A stretch of DNA of 64,000 nucleotides. Source: Mytilus trossulus. Its lineage: Eukaryota. The translations under genes were made by a program, and so were the position numbers. The stretch is from contig NC_086378.1 of assembly GCF_036588685.1 (NCBI RefSeq), positions 43,152,001 to 43,216,000 of the forward strand, given 5' to 3'. Positions 6,201 to 64,000 of the stretch are shown here, piece after piece. Below the pieces are notes generated by a model. The model worked only from the letters and a program-made list of their open reading frames with translations, did no database searches and was not told the DNA's origin. Positions within the stretch are counted from its first letter, which is position 1; each line of letters starts with the position of its first letter.

Positions 6201-9200
6201 CAAGTAGAAGATAAGATTTCACAATTCTTGTCACAGAAAACAAACAAAAACAGCTTGGTAAGTATTTATTTCACAAAGGCAAAACATTGGAATGGTATTC
6301 CTGTGGAAACAATGTCATAGAGAAGTTGTACAATCCTATATGTTTGTCAGGACCTCAAAATTTGACAGACCAAATTGTTAAATACTGATTTTTTGGGTGT
6401 AATATCAATTCTCACTGACCTTTATTTTCACAACTTGTAAGTGTATATTAAAATTTCATGATTAAGTGATTGGAGTATTCTGTTCTGAACGAATTTTTTG
6501 ATACAATTAACTGCAGCAGAAAACATGATATGGAATAATCTATCTTTATACAAATAGTATTTGCAGTGCAAGAGTTGCCACTGGTAGATATGGTTCCTAT
6601 GGCAAACATTCCTTGCAGTAAGAGAAAATTTTATAAACAAAACAAATGACATGTATTGGATGAATAATTAAGTCAAACTAACAATGATTGTCAGAGTCTG
6701 GGTTTCCGCTGGCGGTCGCCATTTTCGCAATTTGCGAAAAAATAATAATTGTGGCTATTAAAATTCGTCATTGGCGAAAGAAATATATATGACGATTTAT
6801 TTTCAGCCATCTTGTTTATTTACTTTTTTCGGGTTTCTCTGACTTTACCATGTTTACCGATCAGACAATACTCGGATTTCACCTTGAACTCATTAAGATT
6901 TTGACAGAAAATCAATAATCAGCTGATTGCATTTATAGCTATCGACATCAAAGGACTAACTAATAAAGGTGTTGATTGTATGATATGACAAAATGATATG
7001 GTTAAATGGCTTCTTTTGCATGTCATAAAAGGGATTTATTTACCGCTTTGCGACGCACGTGTTTGAAGCAAAGTTTACGCTTCCTCTACTTCTTTCGAAA
7101 AGAAAATTGTTGTTATGACGAAAAATGTTCAAAAGCTAGAAAGGTCGCTGATTTAAAACTTTATCATTTAACTTTCATATAGATCATTGAGTGGGTACTT
7201 CAAAGTCGTTTCAGTTACACACGTGTTTCAAGCATATAGTTTTACTTATTTACGATGGTCTAGAAAAGAAAACTGTCATTATGAAGAAATATATTCAAGT
7301 GGTTGTCATGAGAGTTACCCTTCAATGTAATGACTACACCTTACACGAGGGATCAATTCCAAGTGATAAGATTCTTCGTTTTGCTGTAAAAATCACTTCT
7401 TGTTTAGCGGAAAAGGGGGGGGGGGGAATAAAATTTTATTAGAAAAATATATTTGGCGAAAAAAATAATAAAGTGGCGAAAAATATATTGTTTTGGCTAA
7501 AGAGGTGGCGAAAAAAATAATTGACCCAGGGGAAACCCTGGTCAGAGTGTGTGTGTATACAGATGTCTTATGGTCTGAAATTTTCTGTCTCACATATATG
7601 TCCATTGTTCTTGACAACTTGATTTTACTTCAGTGTCACTGCATGACAAAACTTAAATAGCAAATTTATTGTGTTTTTTGTCACATGATGTTGTGAGTAA
7701 TAGGATAACCATATAAGTTCAATTTATACATTTCCACCATTTGATTAAATTTTCATGATGTAATGATTTCTTTGTAAGAAGGACAAATTTGAAATTTACT
7801 GAAAAGTTGAAAGGTTTGCACCTTTACACAAATAAATTTAAAACAGCCCTGCTATAATCTATTTCAGATTTTGAAGGAATTAGTTGTGATATTGATTGCA
7901 CATACAGCATATCAGCACTTGGTAAGTATTGTATTAGACAATTATCTTACTTTTTATCTGACAGTAATTTGACATTAGGCTTCATGTATATTAACATTAG
8001 GAAATATAAAGGTTGAGCAGCAGCATACAATTTTATAAGAACTGTTTTGATTTCAATTAATGATCACTTGTTATTAATTTGTCTCAAGGTATCTCAAGAC
8101 CAGCAGTAAATATTGGTAGATGATATTTAGGAGGTGAACAAAGATATGTTGTATAAATCAAACTATCAAAGATGTGCCATCAACACCATATTCTCTTAAA
8201 GTTATTACAACATTAGATCAGTGATGATGTTCCTGACTTGTCACATAGATATGCAGTTTTTCACTAAACTAGAACACATTTTTATTTAGGGGCCAGCTGA
8301 GGCCCACCTTTGGTTGTTGGATTTTGTCACTGCATTGAAGACCCATGGGTGGCCTTCGGCTGTTATCTGCTCTTTGGTCAGGTTGTTGTCTCTTTGATAT
8401 ATACCTCATTGCCATTCTAAATTTTATTTCAAAGATACTTTTTTTTCTAAATGTTTGTGAGTATTCAAAATTGCTACAAAATTGTTGGCATTAAAGTAAC
8501 ACTTACATTGATAGTTTACTGTCTTAAAACATTTGGTTTTGACAACTCTTTTTAGAAGGAGAATGTGGGACTTGAAAATATTATTCTTGTACCAGAATAA
8601 TGCTTTAGTTTCTCATCCAATTTCCTTCAGTTTATGTTGCAAATTTTAAGTTATGAAAACCTTGGGTGAGTTCAGTGATTATTAGTATATACTGGTTACC
8701 AATTTTTTAAACTTCTTATGAACGTTTTATGAATTCTTAAACAGGCTTTTTAGGTTGCTATTTTGTAACAACAGAACTAAAATAATGGTATTTTTCAGGA
8801 TGTACCAAGATTCCACAAAGTTTTAGATGTTATTCAAAAGTCTTCTCCAGATATAATACTCACTCTTCCTAACGAGAGTATAATAAAACAGATGTGCTCA
8901 TCTTCAACACAGTCAATAATTCCATATAGGTTGCTCATGTAAGCTTTTATTTTTAAACATAGAAATTTCACAAATAACAAATTCATACTATAGGTCAATA
9001 TTGTAGGTTCATGTGTTATCTGCAGAATATTAACCATTTGGTTTATATTTTTAGATAGTTTTTCATTCATTTAGGAATAAGTTACTGTATTTTGACTGTC
9101 ATGCTCAAATTGGAGAACATTTAACATATAACTATGAATGATCTTTTCTCATTTCTTGTGTATAGGAATAGACAGTGTACATGAAAAAAAAAAGAAACGA

Positions 9201-15326: not shown

Positions 15327-16101
15327 CTGCGAGTACTCTCAAATCGTATTTTCTTGTTAATTCGACCTGTTGACACTGTTTATAAGGCTTTTTTGTTATT
15401 TTTTATTTATATGGATCTTGTCTGTACACCAGCTTTGATTATCTGTAATATCTTCAATTTTTCACTTATTCTTACAACATTTGTATAAACTTCAAGATTA
15501 TAAAAAAACGTTTTTTTTCTAAAGTGAACATTGATTGGTTAAATATTTCTCAGTGATGTCCTGTGTTCGAATTTGTTTGTTAGCTTTTTGGTCATAAATG
15601 TTTGTCTCTAATATTTAATTAACTGTGCATTTGTATTCAGATATCGCAGATCAAATTTATTCGTTCATTGTGTAATCATACGTTTTATTGATTGAGTTAA
15701 GTCTGCCAATTGATATTTTATCGTATGTTTTTCTATGTTGTGATGTTATGCTATTGTTTCAGAAAAAGGGAGAGGGTTTGGATCCACTAAAAGGTTTAAT
15801 CCCGCTGCAAATGTTTGCACCTGTCCTAAGTCAGGAATCTGATGTACAGTAGTTGTCGTTTGTTTATGTAATATATACGTGTTTCTCGTTTCTCGTTTTG
15901 TTTATATAGATTAGACCGTTGGTTTTCCCGTTTGAATGGTTTTACACTAGTAATTTTGGGGCCCTTTATAGCTTGTTGTTCGGTGTGAGCCAAGGCTCCG
16001 TGTTGAAGGCCGTACTTTAACCTATAATGGTTTACTTTTTAAATTGTTATTTGGATGGAGAGTTGTCTCATTGGCACTCACACCACATCTTCCTATATCT
16101 A
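15327..16101 (+). mobile_element. Interspersed non-coding retro-like repeat carrying a twister-like motif
   Basis: Boundaries defined by the interrupted MITE (tataa on both sides); its 3' ~350 bp is nearly identical to 24605-24953. Confidence 0.75.
15759..15842 (+). ncRNA. Twister-like ribozyme motif, type P5 (family B)
   Basis: TCAGA..GGGA GAGGG..T^AA TCCC GC TGCAAA/TTTGCA CCTG TCCTAAGT CAGG..TCTGA; stems P2-P5 and both pseudoknots can form. Confidence 0.65.
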
Positions 16102-20247: not shown

Positions 20248-20840
20248 ATAAAAGAGGGACGAAAGATACCAAAGGGACAGTCAAACTCATAAATCTAAAT
20301 AAACTGACAACACCATGGCTAAAAATGAAAAAAGACAAACAGACAAACAATATTACACATGACACGACATAGAAAACTCAAGAATAAACAACACGAACCC
20401 AACCAAAAACTAGGGGTGATCTCGGGTGCTCCGGAAGGGTAAGCAGATCCTGCTCCACATGTGGCACCCGTCTTGTTGCTTATGTGATTACAAATCCAGT
20501 AAATAGTCTAATTCGGTAGGTCACATTCATGAAAGGGAAGGGGACTGTAGTTACGACGTAAGGAACATATCCGATATCATTTGTGAAACGGTTATTCCAT
20601 AAAGGTCAACCAACTCGTGATGGCGTCCGTAAAATTTACGAAGGGATGATTTCAACTTCACCATTTGGAACTCTTGGTTTAATAGCTTCCTTGTGAGCAG
20701 CAACCCTCTATCAAGAAAATCATGATGGGAAATGCAAGCACGGGAATATCGTATCAATTGGGAGATATATACCCCGTATGCAGGTGCTGCTGGAATGTTG
20801 CTACTTAGAAATGGAAAGTTCACAATTGGAAAGCTGAAAA
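20248..20840 (-). mobile_element. Penelope-like retroelement 3' fragment (RT C-terminal region + 3' UTR)
   Basis: ORF 20551..20823 NFPFLSSNIPAAPAYGVYISQLIRYSRAC...KLLNQ...LRKFYGRHHELV; similar 3' ends at 34175-34215, 36448-36655 and 39850-40190. Confidence 0.75.
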
Positions 20841-21615
20841 TCTGCGAGTAAACGTTCTTAAGTTTGTATTGAAAGCATCATATCTCCAATTGCAAGTCCT
20901 TTCCTAAAAAATATATGTTGGTGAAACATATATTGTCGTTCTTTTGAACTAGGTTGTATTCAGCGTAGAAAATATCATTGATTTTTTTCAATATGCACTT
21001 TGGCAAATACATACACAAAATCTTTTTTTTTATCAGTATATTGAACAAATAATAAATGTGGTCCTGTGAAATTCGGAGCATGATTTTATTTAAAATCAGG
21101 TAAATATCGAAAGAAATTCAGATGATTTGGGTGTATGAAGCTGTGAAAAAGCACCACTTCATTCCAAAAGGGGAAAATGCGAAATTGCAATCTTAGACAT
21201 TTTGACTTTATGCAAGTTTGAGGGTATTCTTGTTCATTTGTATAATTTAATTCTTGTAATATTTGCAATCAGTCGAAGATTTTAAAGCATGAAATTCAAC
21301 ACTTCAGAGGTTTATTATTTATCCATCGTTTCACTATGCAGTTAAAAGTAGCAATAATAATAATAATAAAAAAAGATGAAAATTTTAGACCTGCTTTTTA
21401 TAGTTGTAATCTCTGTCCTGTCTATTTATATTTTACTCTATTCGGACCTGTCTTAGTTTTTCCTGACTTTTGTTTACACAAAATGAAAACCTATTATTAT
21501 GCCTGTATTCTATGCTCTGTACAAGGCTTTTCGAGAAACACGATATTAAATTTGTTGAAAATTAATTATTTTGAATGCAATTTCTTAGTTAATCTGGGTT
21601 TCGGTAAATTAAATT

Positions 21616-21990
21616 TCTAGTGCAGAAAAATTGGTACCGTTAATGTTATTACTACCACAGGGTCGATGCCTCTGCTGGTGGACTGTTAGTCCCCGAGGGT
21701 ATCACCAGCCCAGTAGCCAGTACTTCGGTACTGGCATGAAAATACGGATTGTTTGTTGCTGTTACAAATTGTTAGAAATTATTATAAATTAAGGAATGTA
21801 TCTCCTCATGCAAAGCTCTGATTCCTTTTACGGATTTGGCTATACTTTTTGGACCTTTTGGATTATAGCTCTTCATCTTTTATATAAACTTTGGATTTCA
21901 AATATTTTGGCCACGAGCATCACAGAAGAGACTTGTTTTGTCGAAATGCGCATCTGGTGCAGAAAAATTGGTACCGTTAATTTTATTGTA
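21616..21990 (+). mobile_element. Terminally redundant ~337-nt hammerhead-bearing monomer (retrozyme/Penelope LTR-like); core mutated
   Basis: tct(a/g)gtgcagaaaaattggtaccgttaat occurs at 21616 and 21953; hammerhead at 21917-21960 has CAGAAGA instead of CTGAAGA. Confidence 0.7.
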
Positions 21991-24604: not shown

Positions 24605-24953
24605 ATTGTTTCAGAAAAAGGGAGAAGGTTTGGGCCCATTAAAACGTTTAATCCCGCTGCAAATGTTTGCACCTGTCCTGAGTCAGGAATCTGATGTACA
24701 GTAGTTGTCGTTTGTTTATGTAATATATACGTGTTTCTCGTTTCTCGTTTGGTTATATAGATTAGACCGTTGGTTTTCCCGTTTGAATGGTTTTACACTA
24801 GTTATTTTGGGGCCCTTTATAGCTTGTTGTTCGGTGTGAGCCAAGGCTCCGTGTTGAAGGCCGTACTTTAACCTATAATGGTTTAATTTTTGAATTGTTG
24901 TTTGGATGGAGAGTTGTCTCATTGGCACTCACACCACATCTTCCTATATCTAT
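24605..24953 (+). mobile_element. Second copy of twister-bearing repeat family B
   Basis: Near identity to 15753-16101. Confidence 0.85.
24611..24694 (+). ncRNA. Twister-like ribozyme motif, type P5 (family B; L4 A->G variant)
   Basis: TCAGA..GGGA GAAGG..T^AA TCCC GC TGCA..TGCA CCTG TCCTGAGT CAGG..TCTGA. Confidence 0.6.
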
Positions 24954-27900: not shown

Positions 27901-29186
27901 CGGATTCGGATTCGAGACGATCTACCAGTTTAGATTCAAAACGAATACTAAAAGAATTAAATCTAAAATATTTAAAGATGATAGATTTGAAAATACCTCA
28001 ATAAGAATAAATATAAACTGCCCCATGATTCTGACTGTTTTATTTCGCCCCGTCGTATTGACATGAAAAATATTGTGATCTCAATGCTCTTAACTTTGTA
28101 CTTATATTTTGTCTATTAAACATTTTGATTCTAGCGTCACCGATAGACGAAACGTGTGTCTGGTGTAAAAAACGTGAAAGACAGTTATCTATTAGGAGTT
28201 TATTGATATCTTGTAAGATAATGTGTATTTCAATAAGTATATGGACCAAGACAAAAACAACACTTCTTTCCCAAAGGTTCGAGAGACTTGTTCAAATGTA
28301 TATGAATAATCTTAATATTGTTCTGGTTTTCTCAAACAGAATGATAGAAAGATTCAAATGTGGACGGAGGTTAAAACAGGCTAACAGGACAGTTCGCTTA
28401 GTATTCAACGTTTTTATTTTGTTTACATGAATCATAAGTATCGCAATTTTGTGTATTTAAAAAAAATTAAAAAAAATAATGTAGAAATTATTGTTATTCT
28501 CTAAGATACATTATCATCCTTCAGGATTTTACTTTCTCGGGCGTAATACTTATATTACTTCATTTCATTTCGTCTTTTCAAACGTTAGAAAATATATAAT
28601 TAAGTTGACAGAATTATAAAATGCATTTTTCATAACAATGCACTTATTAGATCTTGAAAATTGTAAACATTCTTATACAAACAATTCAGAGTATTTAGGA
28701 ATTATTTTTGCCAAAGGACAACTAATGTACAAAATACACTTTATATTGAATAAATCATTTATCCACGATGTTTTTCATGCTTAATGGCTACGAATTATGC
28801 AGTAAACTGACCTTGTAAAGTCAACAGTACTTTAGAATTCACATATACTACATTGGAAAAAAATATCCAACAGTTGGAACTAAATGACAAATCTTTTTTA
28901 GAATGGTTGAACCGGTTGTTATATTAGTGATATTTTGATAATCAACTTACATTTGACTAAAATAAATGTTGCATTGGTGATATGCTGACGAACACAAGTT
29001 AGGTCATTTCCCGAAAAAAACCACTAACGTAACAAAATAGTTGTAGAAAGTGTTAAGGTGCTTGTATACTCATAGAGGAAGCTTTTACCTAAAACAAGAG
29101 ACTTCAGCCTATTAACTACTGTTTATATCTTTCGAAAATATACATAACGACCAATAATAATTCAGTAAAACAAATTATTCTACATT

Positions 29187-29277
29187 GGCTGGAGGTATAG
29201 GGGGAGGGTTGAGATCTCACAAACATGTTTAACCCCGCCGCATTTTTGCGCCTGTCCCAAGTCAGGAGCCTCTGGCC
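29187..29277 (+). ncRNA. Twister-like ribozyme motif, type P5 (family A)
   Basis: GGCTGGAGGT ata GGGG GAGGG...T^AA CCCC GC CGCA tttt TGCG CCTG TCCCAAGT CAGG a GCCTCTGGCC; 10-bp P5, P2, P3, P4 and the UCCCAAG loop. Confidence 0.72.
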
Positions 29278-29514
29278 TTTGTTAGTCTTGTATTATTTTA
29301 ATTTTAGTTTCTTGTGTACAATTTGGAAATTAGTATGGCGTTCATTATCACTGAACTAGTATATATTTGTTTAGGGGCCAGCTGAAGGACGCCTCCGTGT
29401 GCGGGAATTTCTCGCTACATTGAAGACCTGTTGGTGACCTTCTGCTGTTGTTTTTTTCTATGGTCGGGTTGTTGTCTCTTTGACACATTCCCCATTTCCA
29501 TTCTCAATTTTATT
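29187..29514 (+). mobile_element. Interspersed repeat family A that begins with a twister-like motif
   Basis: GC-richer island in AT-rich DNA; partial copies at 8268-8428 and 31718-31808. Confidence 0.75.
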
Positions 29515-31140: not shown

Positions 31141-32289
31141 CGCATAAATAGCTTGAAGCTTCATTTCAATATTGAAATAAGCAGCAGACGTAAAGTACAA
31201 TATGATATTACAGTATGTGACCATTGAGTCAATGAGCAAACCAACAAAGTTGGATATACGTTATGACATTATTGAGAACGAAGACTGTTGAATCTGTGTA
31301 CAAATCTGTGTAAAATATAAATGGTACTACAGTACAAAAAAGTTAATATGATCAAATGACCATACACTATCAAAACCTGGGAACTGAAGTGTGTAGTATA
31401 CAATTTCTAATTATAAAAAGCTATTTCATGTTCAGTTAAAAAATTACGACATAATTCAAGCGTGAAAATGTCATCATAATTCAATCATATCGCATAAAAA
31501 TCTACTCAAAAGGATGTTTTAAGAAGGTAAAAAGGTGATAGATTTTTACAAGAACGTTCATTTTGTCTTGCAAGAAGTGGGTTATTTTTTTTCAAGTCTA
31601 ACACTCTGTTCCAAATGATAAACATGGAGAATCTGCAGATTATAAATTGAACTGAAATTAGCATGGGCATGATTTATGCATAGCTTTAATTGATTTTTCA
31701 CATCAAACTAAAATATTCAAAGATTCATTGGTGGCCTTCGGCTGTTGTCTGCTCTGTGGTCGGGTTGTTGTCGCTTTGACACATTCACCATTTCCTTTCT
31801 CAATTTTAAAGATACCTTACATTTGACTTTCATGTTATGCCTCTTTCAGTATTTTAGCTCAACGTGTATTTATCATCCGTCAGCTGTCTTCAATTTTGAT
31901 TTTTGGTTGTAAATAACAATTTAGAAATTTGATTCAAAATACAACCAGTAGTAGTTTACCATAGTTATGATTTCAAACATTTATTTAGAAGAAATCAAAC
32001 CAAGAAAAATAAAAAAAAATAAAAAATAAAAAGACAGCCTGAGTTTATCAAACAAACTGCATACGAGGTAGACGGATGCGTTGACGGAATAGACATCTCC
32101 TGCTATGCATAACATGCCACACGGACACACCGTATTGGTCAATAAATTTGTTATAGTGACCGGAAAAACTCATGAAGTGTCAATTCCAGTCCTTTTTCCT
32201 CATAACACTGTTTAGGCTTTCAATGAAGTTCATCTAGGGTGAGCCTGCACGAGCGTAACGTATTAATTGGGATATGTAAACGACGAACA

Positions 32290-32818
32290 TATAAGCAGAA
32301 GATCAAAGAAGCCAGTTCATTTAATTTCACTTTCAGATACATGTATATTGATGATGTTCTTTCCATAAACAATCCAAACTTTTTCTGATTGGGTTCCATT
32401 GATATATTCCCCAGAACTTGAAACTAAAGAAACAACAGACACGTCTTCCTCTGCCTCATATTTTAGACCTATATCTCGAATTTGACATACACGGTCATCT
32501 CAGTACCAGAATCTGAGACAAATGAGACGATTTTGATTTTGAAATTATCAATTTCCTCACCTTAGTAGCAATATACCAACTTCACCTGCATATGGGATAT
32601 ACATTTCCCAACTTATTCGGTATTCAAGAGCTTGCAGCTCCTACTCAAGACTTTGTAAAACGTCACCAGTGTCTGAACAGAAAGTTGATAAACCAGGGGT
32701 ATGTCAAAGAAAGTCTCGTTATTTTTCTTTAAAAAAGTTCATCGGAAGGTAGCAAGACCTTGTTGATAAATATTCCGTATCAGCTTCACAAATTATACAC
32801 GATGGTCTCGAACTATAG
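32290..32818 (+). pseudogene. Degraded Penelope-like reverse transcriptase
   Basis: Frameshifted translation FNFTFRY..IDDVLSINNP...ELETKETTDT...FLDL...DDFDFEIINF.HLSSNIPTSPAYGIYISQLIRYSRACS (YIDD-type RT motif). Confidence 0.8.
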
Positions 32819-32932
32819 ATTCTACGTACTGACGTAGTTTGTCATTTTAATAACGTGTTATACTATTCTTTTATTTGTCTTTATTAATTTAACTTTTACT
32901 GTTTAGTCTGTTTTTATTGATATCTTTTTGGC

Positions 32933-37000: not shown

Positions 37001-38404
37001 TATTCAACCTTTGCCAACAAATGCAATAGATGTTGTTAAAACAAGTAAATATTTAATTATAGGGGTAAAATACAACTTCATTATTTTTAAGCAGTAAAAG
37101 AAAGAACAATAAAATACTTGCCAACTTAATATGTGGTGGTAAATATGAAATTTGAAAAAAGGCAAAAATTTTAAAATGAAATGCTTAAAACTTGGCAAAT
37201 TTTGCGTTTCGAATCAAAAACAATCCATCAAACATACTCAAAAATGAAAATAATTAAGTAAAAAACAAATCAATTAATTTTTGAATTTACAAGATTTGTT
37301 CACTTATGTCATGTGTTGATGATTCAATACCGGCAGTGCATGAACTCTAAGTCATTTAAATTCTGTTTTTAAAAGTTGCTTTATCTTTTTTTTGTTAATA
37401 TATTTAGTTTAAACTAGTTTTGAATCAGCTGAAGGATTTATGTTCAATATAAAGTAAACTACCGAACTCCAAAGAAAGTTAAATCGGAAAGTCCCTTATC
37501 AAGTGGCAAAATCAAAAGCTCAAACACAACAAACGAATGGAAACAACTGTCATATTCTTGAATTATGTAGAAATTGTGCAGTAAACATTAGATTTTTACA
37601 TATAAGTTGCATAATTCCTTGCTGAATTTGACAATAATTTTTGAAAAATTAGTATAACTACACACATATGTTTTTTAAAAGTGATCCAGAAGACAATTTT
37701 AATATACAGAGAATTGCTCAGAACGTATGAGTCGTGGTATACTATTATCATATTATACTGGAGTGAAATGTCCCACTCAATTCTGCATTTGTATTACTAG
37801 TAGTTGCCTTACTAAACGTGGGATATGAGCCAAAATCTCTTCTAAAGGAAATCAAAGCTAATCAAAGTACTGAAAGACTAGAGATCGGATGACCCCATGT
37901 TCTGGTCAATGGTCACAAACACTTGTCTCAGAACAAAGAAAAATCCTATCTCTATACCTGAAAGTTAGGTTCCGATATATCAAATCTACTCTAACATCGC
38001 TAGGTTGATTTTCCAGGCACTTTATATATATATATATATATGTATACGAGTCTAAATTGAAAACTACGTTCAAACCTATGATTGCGTTGGATAAAAACCG
38101 CAATTTTTATACGTGTGCATGTAAAACAAATTTCGTTGTAGAAGGGTCTAAAAACAGCACAAACAAAATTTTCCAAAAGACCAAAAAAGTGAAAAAGTAT
38201 ACTTAAACAAAACGCATTTGACTAACAGGTCGAACAACTGATGTTCTTTAACCCTGCTGACTGCCATTGGCGATTGCCAAATAAAATTGATCACAAGATG
38301 TAACAAAATGGATCTTAATATAAATTTAATACTAAACAGAATTTTTTTTTAACTTGTGGCCACGATGTTATGCCACAAACATACGGTGTCAATATTTTTT
38401 TAGT

Positions 38405-38448
38405 ACACCAGATCCGGATTTCGACAATAAATGTCTCTTCAGTGTTGT
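38405..38448 (-). ncRNA. Minimal type I hammerhead ribozyme motif
   Basis: ACAACA CTGAAGA GACA tttat TGTC GAA ATCCGGAT C^TGGTGT. Confidence 0.75.
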
Positions 38449-38976
38449 TAGGGATCGAAACGGTATTTGGAAGGCCATATAAAAAGTACCCTCATTTTTA
38501 GAAAAAGTAACCTCATTTTTTTTAGATAGACTCTTGAATTTTGATAGTCAATATAGGATGAACGGATCATACAAACCGGAGGGAAAATATGATACAAGCC
38601 CAAACGAAAAAATATAAACGAGTCTAAATTGAAAACTACGTTCAAACCTATGATTGCGTTGGATAAAACCCGCAATTTTTATACATATGCATGTAAAACA
38701 AATTTCATTGTAGAAGGGTCTAAAAACAGCACAAACAAAATTTTCCAAAAGACCAAAAAAGTGAAAAAGTATATTTAAACAAAACGCATTTGACTAACAG
38801 GTCGAACAACTGATGTTCTCTAACCCTGCTGACTGCCATTGGCGATTGCCAAATAAAATTGATCACAATATGTAACAAAATGGATCTTAATATAAATTTA
38901 ATACTAAACAGAATTTTTTTTTAACTTGTGGCCACGATGTTATGCCACAAACATACGGTGTCAATATTTTTTTAGT

Positions 38977-39020
38977 ACCCCAGATCCGGATTTCGACAAT
39001 AAATGTCTCTTCAGTGATGT
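38977..39020 (-). ncRNA. Minimal type I hammerhead ribozyme motif
   Basis: ACATCA CTGAAGA GACA tttat TGTC GAA ATCCGGAT C^TGGGGT. Confidence 0.75.
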
Positions 39021-39399
39021 TAGGGATCGAAACGGTATTTGGAAGGCCATATAAAAAGTACCCTCATTTTTAGATAGACTCTTGAATTTTAAGAGTCAAT
39101 ATAGGATGAACGGATCATACAAACCGGAGGGAAAATATGATACAAGCCCAAACGAAAAAATATAAACGAGTCTAAATTGAAAACTACGTTCAAACCTATG
39201 ATTGCGTTGGATAAAAACCGCTATTTTTATACGTATGCATGTAAAAATGTAAAACAAATTTCGTTGTAGAAGGGTCTAAATACAGCACAAACAACATTTT
39301 CCAAAAGTATATATATATATTTCTCTGATTCAAGTTCCTGAGTGGATGATGAATAAATGACAGGGAAGTCAATCTCACCGTAATAATTATCATATTGTT

Positions 39400-63907: not shown

Positions 63908-64000
63908 ATGATATAACAATGGCCATTTTCATGACTTGGTACAGGCCAATTTTAAAGATAAAAATGGTGGGTTGAACCTGTGGCGATCAGATTGAAATAG

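Follow-up and report, generated by a model that had tools for sequence, protein, structure and literature searches.

Penelope-like elements (PLEs) are the retroelements closest to telomerase. To our knowledge, canonical PLEs always carry hammerhead ribozymes, and we know of no role assigned to them. Besides bivalve genomes, to which we return below, the Naiad clade of PLEs is dominant in crab genomes too, and the report that Naiads thrive without a ribozyme has reportedly been used to argue that the ribozyme may be dispensable or merely parasitic.

The hammerheads of PLEs have helix III reduced to a palindrome and act as dimers (Cervera and de la Pena, 2014; PMC4209133), and minimal dimeric PLE hammerheads are also attributed to Lunse et al, 2016 (PMC5785218) in the passage of PMC6765202 that cites that work. 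Naiads are diagnosed by DKA in place of DKG together with a CxC motif; they are 3.4–4.4 kb long, form pseudo-LTR (pLTR) partial tandems and inverted copies, dominate bivalve genomes, carry a GIY-YIG endonuclease N-terminal to the reverse transcriptase (RT) and none C-terminal to it, have no canonical hammerhead, and in some cases encode selenoproteins (Craig et al, 2021; PMC8557442). Twister ribozymes, the second class of interest here, comprise a circularly permuted type P5 (RF02684, clan CL00120; Roth et al, 2014), and they have been described within a retrotransposon in the T-variant twisters of the RTE element Perere-3 of Schistosoma mansoni (Liu et al, 2021; PMC8501958). Type-P1 twisters are predicted in bivalves according to our literature search. 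We found no paper linking twister to Naiads or PLEs in the literature searched, and the Naiad paper (PMC8557442) does not mention twister.

Results

A type-P5 twister-like module in the window

The window analysed here is a 64,000-nt stretch of the Mytilus trossulus genome (contig NC_086378.1), and the module under study lies on its plus strand at 29187–29277. It is closed by P5, whose 5' strand GGCTGGAGGT (29187–29196) pairs with the 3' strand GCCTCTGGCC (29268–29277) through seven Watson–Crick and three G-U pairs. The L2 linker AUA (29197–29199), in which the A adjoining P2 is conserved (its alignment column is A in 32/34 sequences), leads to the P2 3' strand GGGG (29200–29203); this strand pairs, and covaries, with the P2 5' strand CCCC (29233–29236), variants elsewhere being GGGA/UCCC, GUGU/ACAC and GGGC/GCCC. 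Next comes GAGGG (29204–29208), whose G-A (29204–29205) is invariant (G 32/32 and A 32/32 in the aligned relatives) and whose GGG (29206–29208) pairs and covaries with CCC at 29256–29258, forming the T1 pseudoknot. G29204, the first G of GAGGG, is the equivalent of the catalytic guanine and, we assume, corresponds to O. sativa G45.

The P1 region follows, with palindrome 1, UGAGAUCUCA (29210–29219), standing where the 3' strand of P1 would be, and palindrome 2, AAACAUGUUU (29221–29230), whose last base is the predicted cleavage-site U. The predicted scissile bond (29230/29231) falls within U|AA (29230–29232), at the place that L1 of twister has relative to P2. The two columns after the predicted cut are A in 32/34 and 33/34 relatives, while the nucleotide before it (N-1) is U in 30/34 and C in 3/34. 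Downstream of the P2 5' strand, the GC junction (29237–29238) supplies one strand of the T2 pseudoknot (G29237–U29262 and C29238–G29261) and is followed by the P3 hairpin CGCA-UUUU-UGCG (29239–29250), all five modelled pairs of which covary, and by the P4 hairpin CCUG/CAGG with its L4 loop UCCCAAGU (DNA: TCCCAAGT; 29251–29266, conserved L4 residues at 29255–29262). P4 also covaries (GCUG/CAGC, ACCG/CGGU, GCAG/CUGC), and within L4 the residues U, C, A, A and G are kept in 31/33 sequences or more. A single A (29267; A in 29/34 sequences), the 5' part of L2, separates P4 from P5. These elements follow one another as in the published twister table (PMC8501958), in the P5 permutation.

A reading of the sequence alone, which preceded this analysis, had listed P5, P2, GAGGG, T|AA, GC, P3 and P4 within 29187–29277, and we found each of them at the stated place on the plus strand. 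The core residues G29204, A29205, A29231/A29232 and the L4 loop are present, among them the catalytic G (GAGGG) and A (UAA) that it had named. Compared with the type-P5 twister (RF02684; Roth et al, 2014), the module has the same order, from P5 through P2(3'), GAGGG and the P1 region to N|AA, P2(5'), GC, P3, P4 with the GUCCCAAG loop, and back to P5; both T1 and T2 are present, and the catalytic G and the post-scissile A are conserved. It differs in having no canonical P1, two zero-loop palindromes lying there instead, in having a P3, which the Rfam P5 model lacks, and in the great length of its P5 (10–21 bp). T2, G-C in the twister consensus, is often G-U, A-U or C-G in the module, and has a G-U pair in the window copy.

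The L4 word occurs four times in the window against 0.01 expected, so that the pattern in the window is far beyond chance. The minimum-free-energy fold offered an alternative pairing of GGGUUGAG with UUUAACCC, which we rejected because other families do not keep it.

The 91 bases belong to the truncated tail of a retroelement

The 91-mer has at least 40 genomic copies of 96–100% identity, and the core pattern GAGGG..TAA-NNNN-GC..GTCCCAAGY has 9,759 exact matches in the 1.3-Gb genome versus 0 for the reversed control. Alignment of the flanks of 30 near-identical copies revealed a common fixed 3' end, ~326 nt downstream of the P5 start (~29513 in the window), and 5' ends that vary from −2 to beyond −1500 nt; the combination indicates 5' truncation by target-primed reverse transcription. 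In the window copy, the homology begins 9–13 nt upstream of P5 (about 29174–29178), and in other copies it extends from 2 to more than 1,500 nt farther upstream. The "repeat boundary" is thus a truncation point and not a true element end. The sequence-only reading had put the module at the 5' end of the repeat and the start of P5 at the repeat boundary; both placements have to be revised, since the module lies in a 3' tail, ~280 nt from its fixed 3' end, in a copy that happens to be truncated just upstream.

We therefore annotate 29176–29513 (plus strand, ~338 bp, ends approximate to a few bases) as the 5'-truncated 3' tail of an element, family 1a, that we assign below to the Naiad-type PLEs. 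The module of this copy is essentially identical to the family consensus. The copy itself, which lacks an RT and any evident promoter, is a dead and truncated insertion, of interest as a representative of its family and not as a functional locus.

Besides this single family-1a copy, the window holds two copies of a second family, with modules at 15767–15836 and 24619–24688 (both plus strand; P2 GGGA/UCCC, P3 UGCAAA/UUUGCA, P5 UUCAGA/UCUGA) and with UGGAUCCA or UGGGCCCA as palindrome 1. The family-2 consensus has GAAGG with the loop CCU, a compensatory T1 change, and a reversion to GAGGG in the copy at 15767 leaves a G-U pair in T1. A weak fourth module match lies at 63929–63979 (minus strand). 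PLE remnants are found at 20590–20982 (minus), 32320–32884 (plus), 8258–8427 (plus) and 31728–31808 (plus), consisting of RT pieces 28–40% identical to the family-1 RT and of fragments of the family-1 tail. When the family-1 tail (29370–29500) is compared with that of family 2 (15940–16070), the blocks GGGGCC, TTGAAGRCC and TTGTCTCWTTGRCAC are common to both; judged by their sequence, these conserved blocks downstream of the module might be another functional 3'-end element.

The host is assigned to the Naiad-type Penelope-like elements

Longer copies have at least 3.6 kb in common, with an RT open reading frame (ORF) upstream of the tail, in an element of ~4 kb present with at least 9,759 modules in the genome. 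The RT ORF contains the motifs LPKLHK, FDFSTLY, GIPMGT and YLDD, preceded by PADKA and CxC (PADKAAN and SCNCS in loci L035 and L168), and it ends once the RT thumb is complete, so that no C-terminal domain or endonuclease follows. The atlas clusters that resemble it are HTH_animal/RVT_1. Pfam returned no RVT or GIY-YIG match in the RT pieces, the longer homologues or the upstream pieces of decayed copies; as the GIY-YIG domain was not detected by Pfam, the Naiad assignment rests on the remaining features.

Two loci illustrate the arrangement of the element. L168 (G000:C1:167500-176500, minus strand) is a pLTR-like partial tandem with a 4,035-nt unit, in which an 888-bp tail is followed by 400 bp and then by the ~3.6-kb body and tail; the module is present in each tail, and the tails are 96.8% identical. 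In L169 (G000:C1:1700500-1708500), the module region occurs twice in inverted orientation, as 298-bp copies that are 100% identical and ~2.7 kb apart. In the L168 genomic copy, the stop 8 codons past DKA is TGA, and the stretch from the RT stop to the module holds SECIS-like hairpins that score just below the Rfam threshold (RF00031, 28.8–32.3 bits; cut-off 35) at L088:3562-3626, L116:3720-3786, L110:3207-3269 and L103:3505-3567. Together, the TGA and these hairpins suggest, from sequence, a selenoprotein-encoding Naiad as described for clams and spiders. No hammerhead was matched at E ≤ 5 in 14 element loci, nor anywhere in the window in the Rfam scan at gathering threshold, including 21616–21990 and 38046–39306. 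On these sequence features we assign the host of the module to the Naiad-type PLEs.

Rfam twister models do not reach threshold

The sequence-only reading had named the Rfam twister models as a covariance-model check, and this check gave no match over threshold in the window or in the relatives (RF02684, RF03160 and RF03154; cut-offs 37.6–67.2 bits). At gathering threshold no family matched the window, and a scan by E-value returned there only a partial twister-P1 alignment covering P3 and P4 (13.3 bits). Over the whole genome, RF02684 scored at most 24.9 bits against its cut-off of 37.6, at places other than 29187–29277, and on 14 element loci the Rfam twister models scored at most 24.1 bits, none at threshold.

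The printed Rfam P5 consensus is without P3 and expects a P1 hairpin, while the module has P3 and no canonical P1, which accounts for the miss; the absent match reflects the models, not a missing fold. The module thus lacks two formal marks of twister, the canonical P1 and a score above the Rfam threshold, and by its fold belongs with the type-P5 twisters.

A decayed type-P1 twister unrelated to the Naiad module was observed at L002:1512-1596 (G000:C2, near 74857349), with a canonical CCGGUCCCAAGCCCGG hairpin and 30.5 bits for RF03160 against a cut-off of 67.2.

Covariation across element lineages

The fold was examined in relatives retrieved through the RT, independently of the RNA. The RT ORF has 3,853 homologues, an alignment of 16 of which was used to retrieve contigs, and the sample consisted of 80 marine-metagenome contigs encoding RT relatives of 37–97% identity. 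A covariance model (R1) built from 8 sequences and restricted to the P2–P4 core, with the pseudoknots left out, gave 32 matches with E ≤ 0.013 in 31 loci. All 32 are on the RT strand, and 31 of them (30 loci) lie 92–1016 nt downstream of the RT match; in the one remaining locus, L138, the module is upstream of the RT, in a pLTR-like position. Among loci with RT identity of at least 50% and at least 600 nt of downstream sequence, the module was found in 23/26; in the 37–50% identity band it was detectable in only 5/15. A second-round model (R2) added three further modules.

Over 30 distinct sequences, 95.9% of cells pair versus 71.5% in shuffles, pairing falls to 39–46% when the partners are slid by 1–3 columns, and compensatory changes occur in 17/22 pairs (among them 3/4 pairs of P2, 5/5 of P3 and 2/4 of P4). 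T1, although outside the search model, is paired in 92.4% of cells and has compensatory changes in 2/3 pairs, switching from GGG:CCC to AGG:CCU (family 2), AGA:UCU (L101) and GGA:UCC (L123). T2, likewise outside the search model, is paired in 100% of cells; its first pair is AU in 9 cases, GU in 9, CG in 6, GC in 1 and UG in 1, and is never unpaired. A closing P5 helix of 10–21 bp, made of unrelated sequences, is present in 29/29 readable flanks. The presence of G-U pairs identifies the RT sense strand as the one that folds.

The covariation of P2, P3, P4, P5, T1 and T2 across many element lineages bears out the type-P5 twister architecture that had been read from the window, and on this comparative evidence we regard the double-pseudoknotted type-P5 twister fold, with P3, as established. 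We also considered decayed genomic copies with an altered P2 (20 examined) as a source of covariation; most merely had a broken P2, being dead and uninformative, and the informative covariation came solely from the RT-linked relatives in metagenomes.

These data bear on the possibility that an ordinary repeat hairpin spells twister-like words by chance. The missing Rfam match would fit such a resemblance, as would the single-sequence fold, which is only modestly better than that of shuffles (z = −2.2). It would leave without explanation the compensatory changes in six helices, both pseudoknots included, in independently retrieved relatives, the 9,759 genome matches versus 0 for the reversed pattern, and the conserved position relative to the RT; nor are the metagenome matches one recent family, their RT identities ranging over 42–97%. 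We consider a chance resemblance hardly credible.

Two palindromes in place of P1

We did not find a canonical P1 joining the strand 5' of the cut to the strand 3' of GAGGG. The sequence-only reading had described a short P1 offset by a bulge; the region is instead made up of two perfect palindromes without a stable fold in cis. Every lineage has, between GAGGG-UU and the cleavage-site U, a pair of palindromes whose centres consist of one base or none. Palindrome 1 is present as 17 different sequences across lineages, with a central pair that is AU in 11, CG in 11, GC in 4, UA in 1 and other in 1, and is self-complementary in 27/28. Palindrome 2, palindromic in nearly all lineages, reads AAACUAGUUU, AAACGUUU, AACCGGUU, AAACCGGUUU and others elsewhere, and ends at the cleavage-site nucleotide in most lineages.

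Two Watson–Crick palindromes with at least 8 paired bases each are present in 21/29 distinct P1 regions versus 0.2% of shuffles. We used this Watson–Crick-only count because a looser one, allowing G-U pairs and short arms, was uninformative (26–52% of shuffles passed). The folding energy of the P1 region as a monomer is 0 to −3 kcal/mol, and the gain on homodimer formation is −12 to −19 kcal/mol in 28/29 P1 regions (−7.6 in the deletion variant L087), with a mean of −15.4 kcal/mol compared to −6.7 for shuffles. Since a zero-loop palindrome cannot form a hairpin, these features point to selection for pairing between two copies, and the two palindromes in place of P1 suggest that the module RNA would dimerise. 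P1 has been reported to be dispensable for twister cleavage (PMC11662667; PMC8501958), as the sequence-only reading had held in part, so that activity of a monomer remains conceivable.

The palindromes could also act as DNA, as sites for a dimeric protein or for the endonuclease of the element, with no relation to the RNA fold. They do resemble restriction-type sites of 6–10 bp, and their sequence varies freely provided that the symmetry is preserved. Yet 17 different words leave nothing conserved for a protein to recognise, the palindromes always occupy precisely the interval from GAGGG-UU to the cleavage-site U in the RNA module, and G-U wobbles are tolerated (GGUGCC, AAACUGGUUU), which is sensible only in RNA. 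A role at the DNA level thus appears very improbable to us.

The module and the PLE hammerheads can be compared directly. Both are folds of small self-cleaving ribozymes in the terminal repeat or 3' region of a PLE, both have the helix next to the cut reduced to a palindrome that can form only between copies, and both reach massive copy numbers, each genome holding many covarying families. The differences are that the module is of the twister class, has two palindromes instead of one, and resides in a Naiad, a host reported to be without canonical hammerheads.

No cleavage footprint in genomic copies

In Schistosoma, Perere-3 copies start at the cleavage site, and we looked for a corresponding excess of 5' ends at the predicted cut among the family-1 genomic copies. 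Only 7 copies start there (four non-consensus bases before AACCCC), 4 of which resemble small internal deletions; a control site 5 nt upstream gave 4 copies and one 4 nt downstream gave 1, with 4,454 read-through copies as the denominator. The genomic copies carry no footprint of cleavage-defined 5' ends and lend cleavage no support. This does not exclude cleavage, because the majority of insertions are truncated at random 5' positions and only a few copies are full-length.

Like the module, the Perere-3 twisters (Liu et al, 2021; PMC8501958) are carried by an abundant retrotransposon and have a P1 that is weak or absent. The Perere-3 twisters are of type P1 and lie at the 5' end of the element, whereas the module is of type P5 and belongs to a PLE 3' tail; in Perere-3, target-site duplications abut the cleavage site and form P1, and activity has been demonstrated, while the activity of the module is a prediction and its genomic copies show no cleavage-site footprint.

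The absent 5' ends would fit a module that is a structured RNA derived from twister and no longer catalytic, serving the RT as a recognition handle in target-primed reverse transcription or acting, by way of its palindromes, as a dimerisation or packaging element. Its place in the 3' UTR argues in the same direction, as cutting would split the ORF from the priming 3' end, and the palindromes on their own would suit a dimerisation signal. Against a loss of catalysis, the core G-A and the post-scissile AA vary hardly, if at all, among lineages whose RTs are up to ~58% different, a simple protein handle would need neither both pseudoknots nor these residues, and canonical PLEs have ribozymes at the same position (PMC4209133). 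We hold a non-catalytic module to be the less likely reading. To the catalytic reading we would give about two chances in three.

Discussion

The explanation that best accounts for the data overall, with a probability of roughly 0.65, is that the 3' tail of these Naiads carries a type-P5 twister that folds, probably self-cleaves, and probably does so as a dimer. In transcripts of active elements the module folds into the double-pseudoknotted twister core, as the covariation shows. Self-cleavage would most likely occur between U29230 and A29231, and would take the place held by the hammerheads near the 3' ends (pLTRs) of canonical PLEs. With two zero-loop palindromes replacing P1 and no fold in cis, the active form would probably be a dimer. 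By analogy with the dimeric PLE hammerheads, this dimer could be made of two RNAs or of two pLTR copies in one tandem transcript. In a symmetric dimer, two duplexes side by side might bridge the two cores, the palindrome-2 duplex standing in for P1. The stricter proposal, that Naiads carry an obligate-dimer twister ribozyme whose palindromes supply P1 in trans and bridge two cores, we put forward tentatively, at odds well below even.

If the ribozyme is an obligate dimer, cutting would require two modules to come together, either within a tandem pLTR transcript or where the RNA is highly concentrated. The module would then be among twisters what the dimeric ribozymes of PLEs are among hammerheads, and no natural twister regulated by dimerisation would have preceded it. 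The palindromes found in place of P1 would offer a directly testable example of a natural ribozyme turned on by dimerisation. A conserved twister fold at the hammerhead position in Naiads would overturn the inference that the ribozyme of PLEs may be dispensable or merely parasitic, and it would follow that two unrelated ribozyme classes have been recruited for one job.
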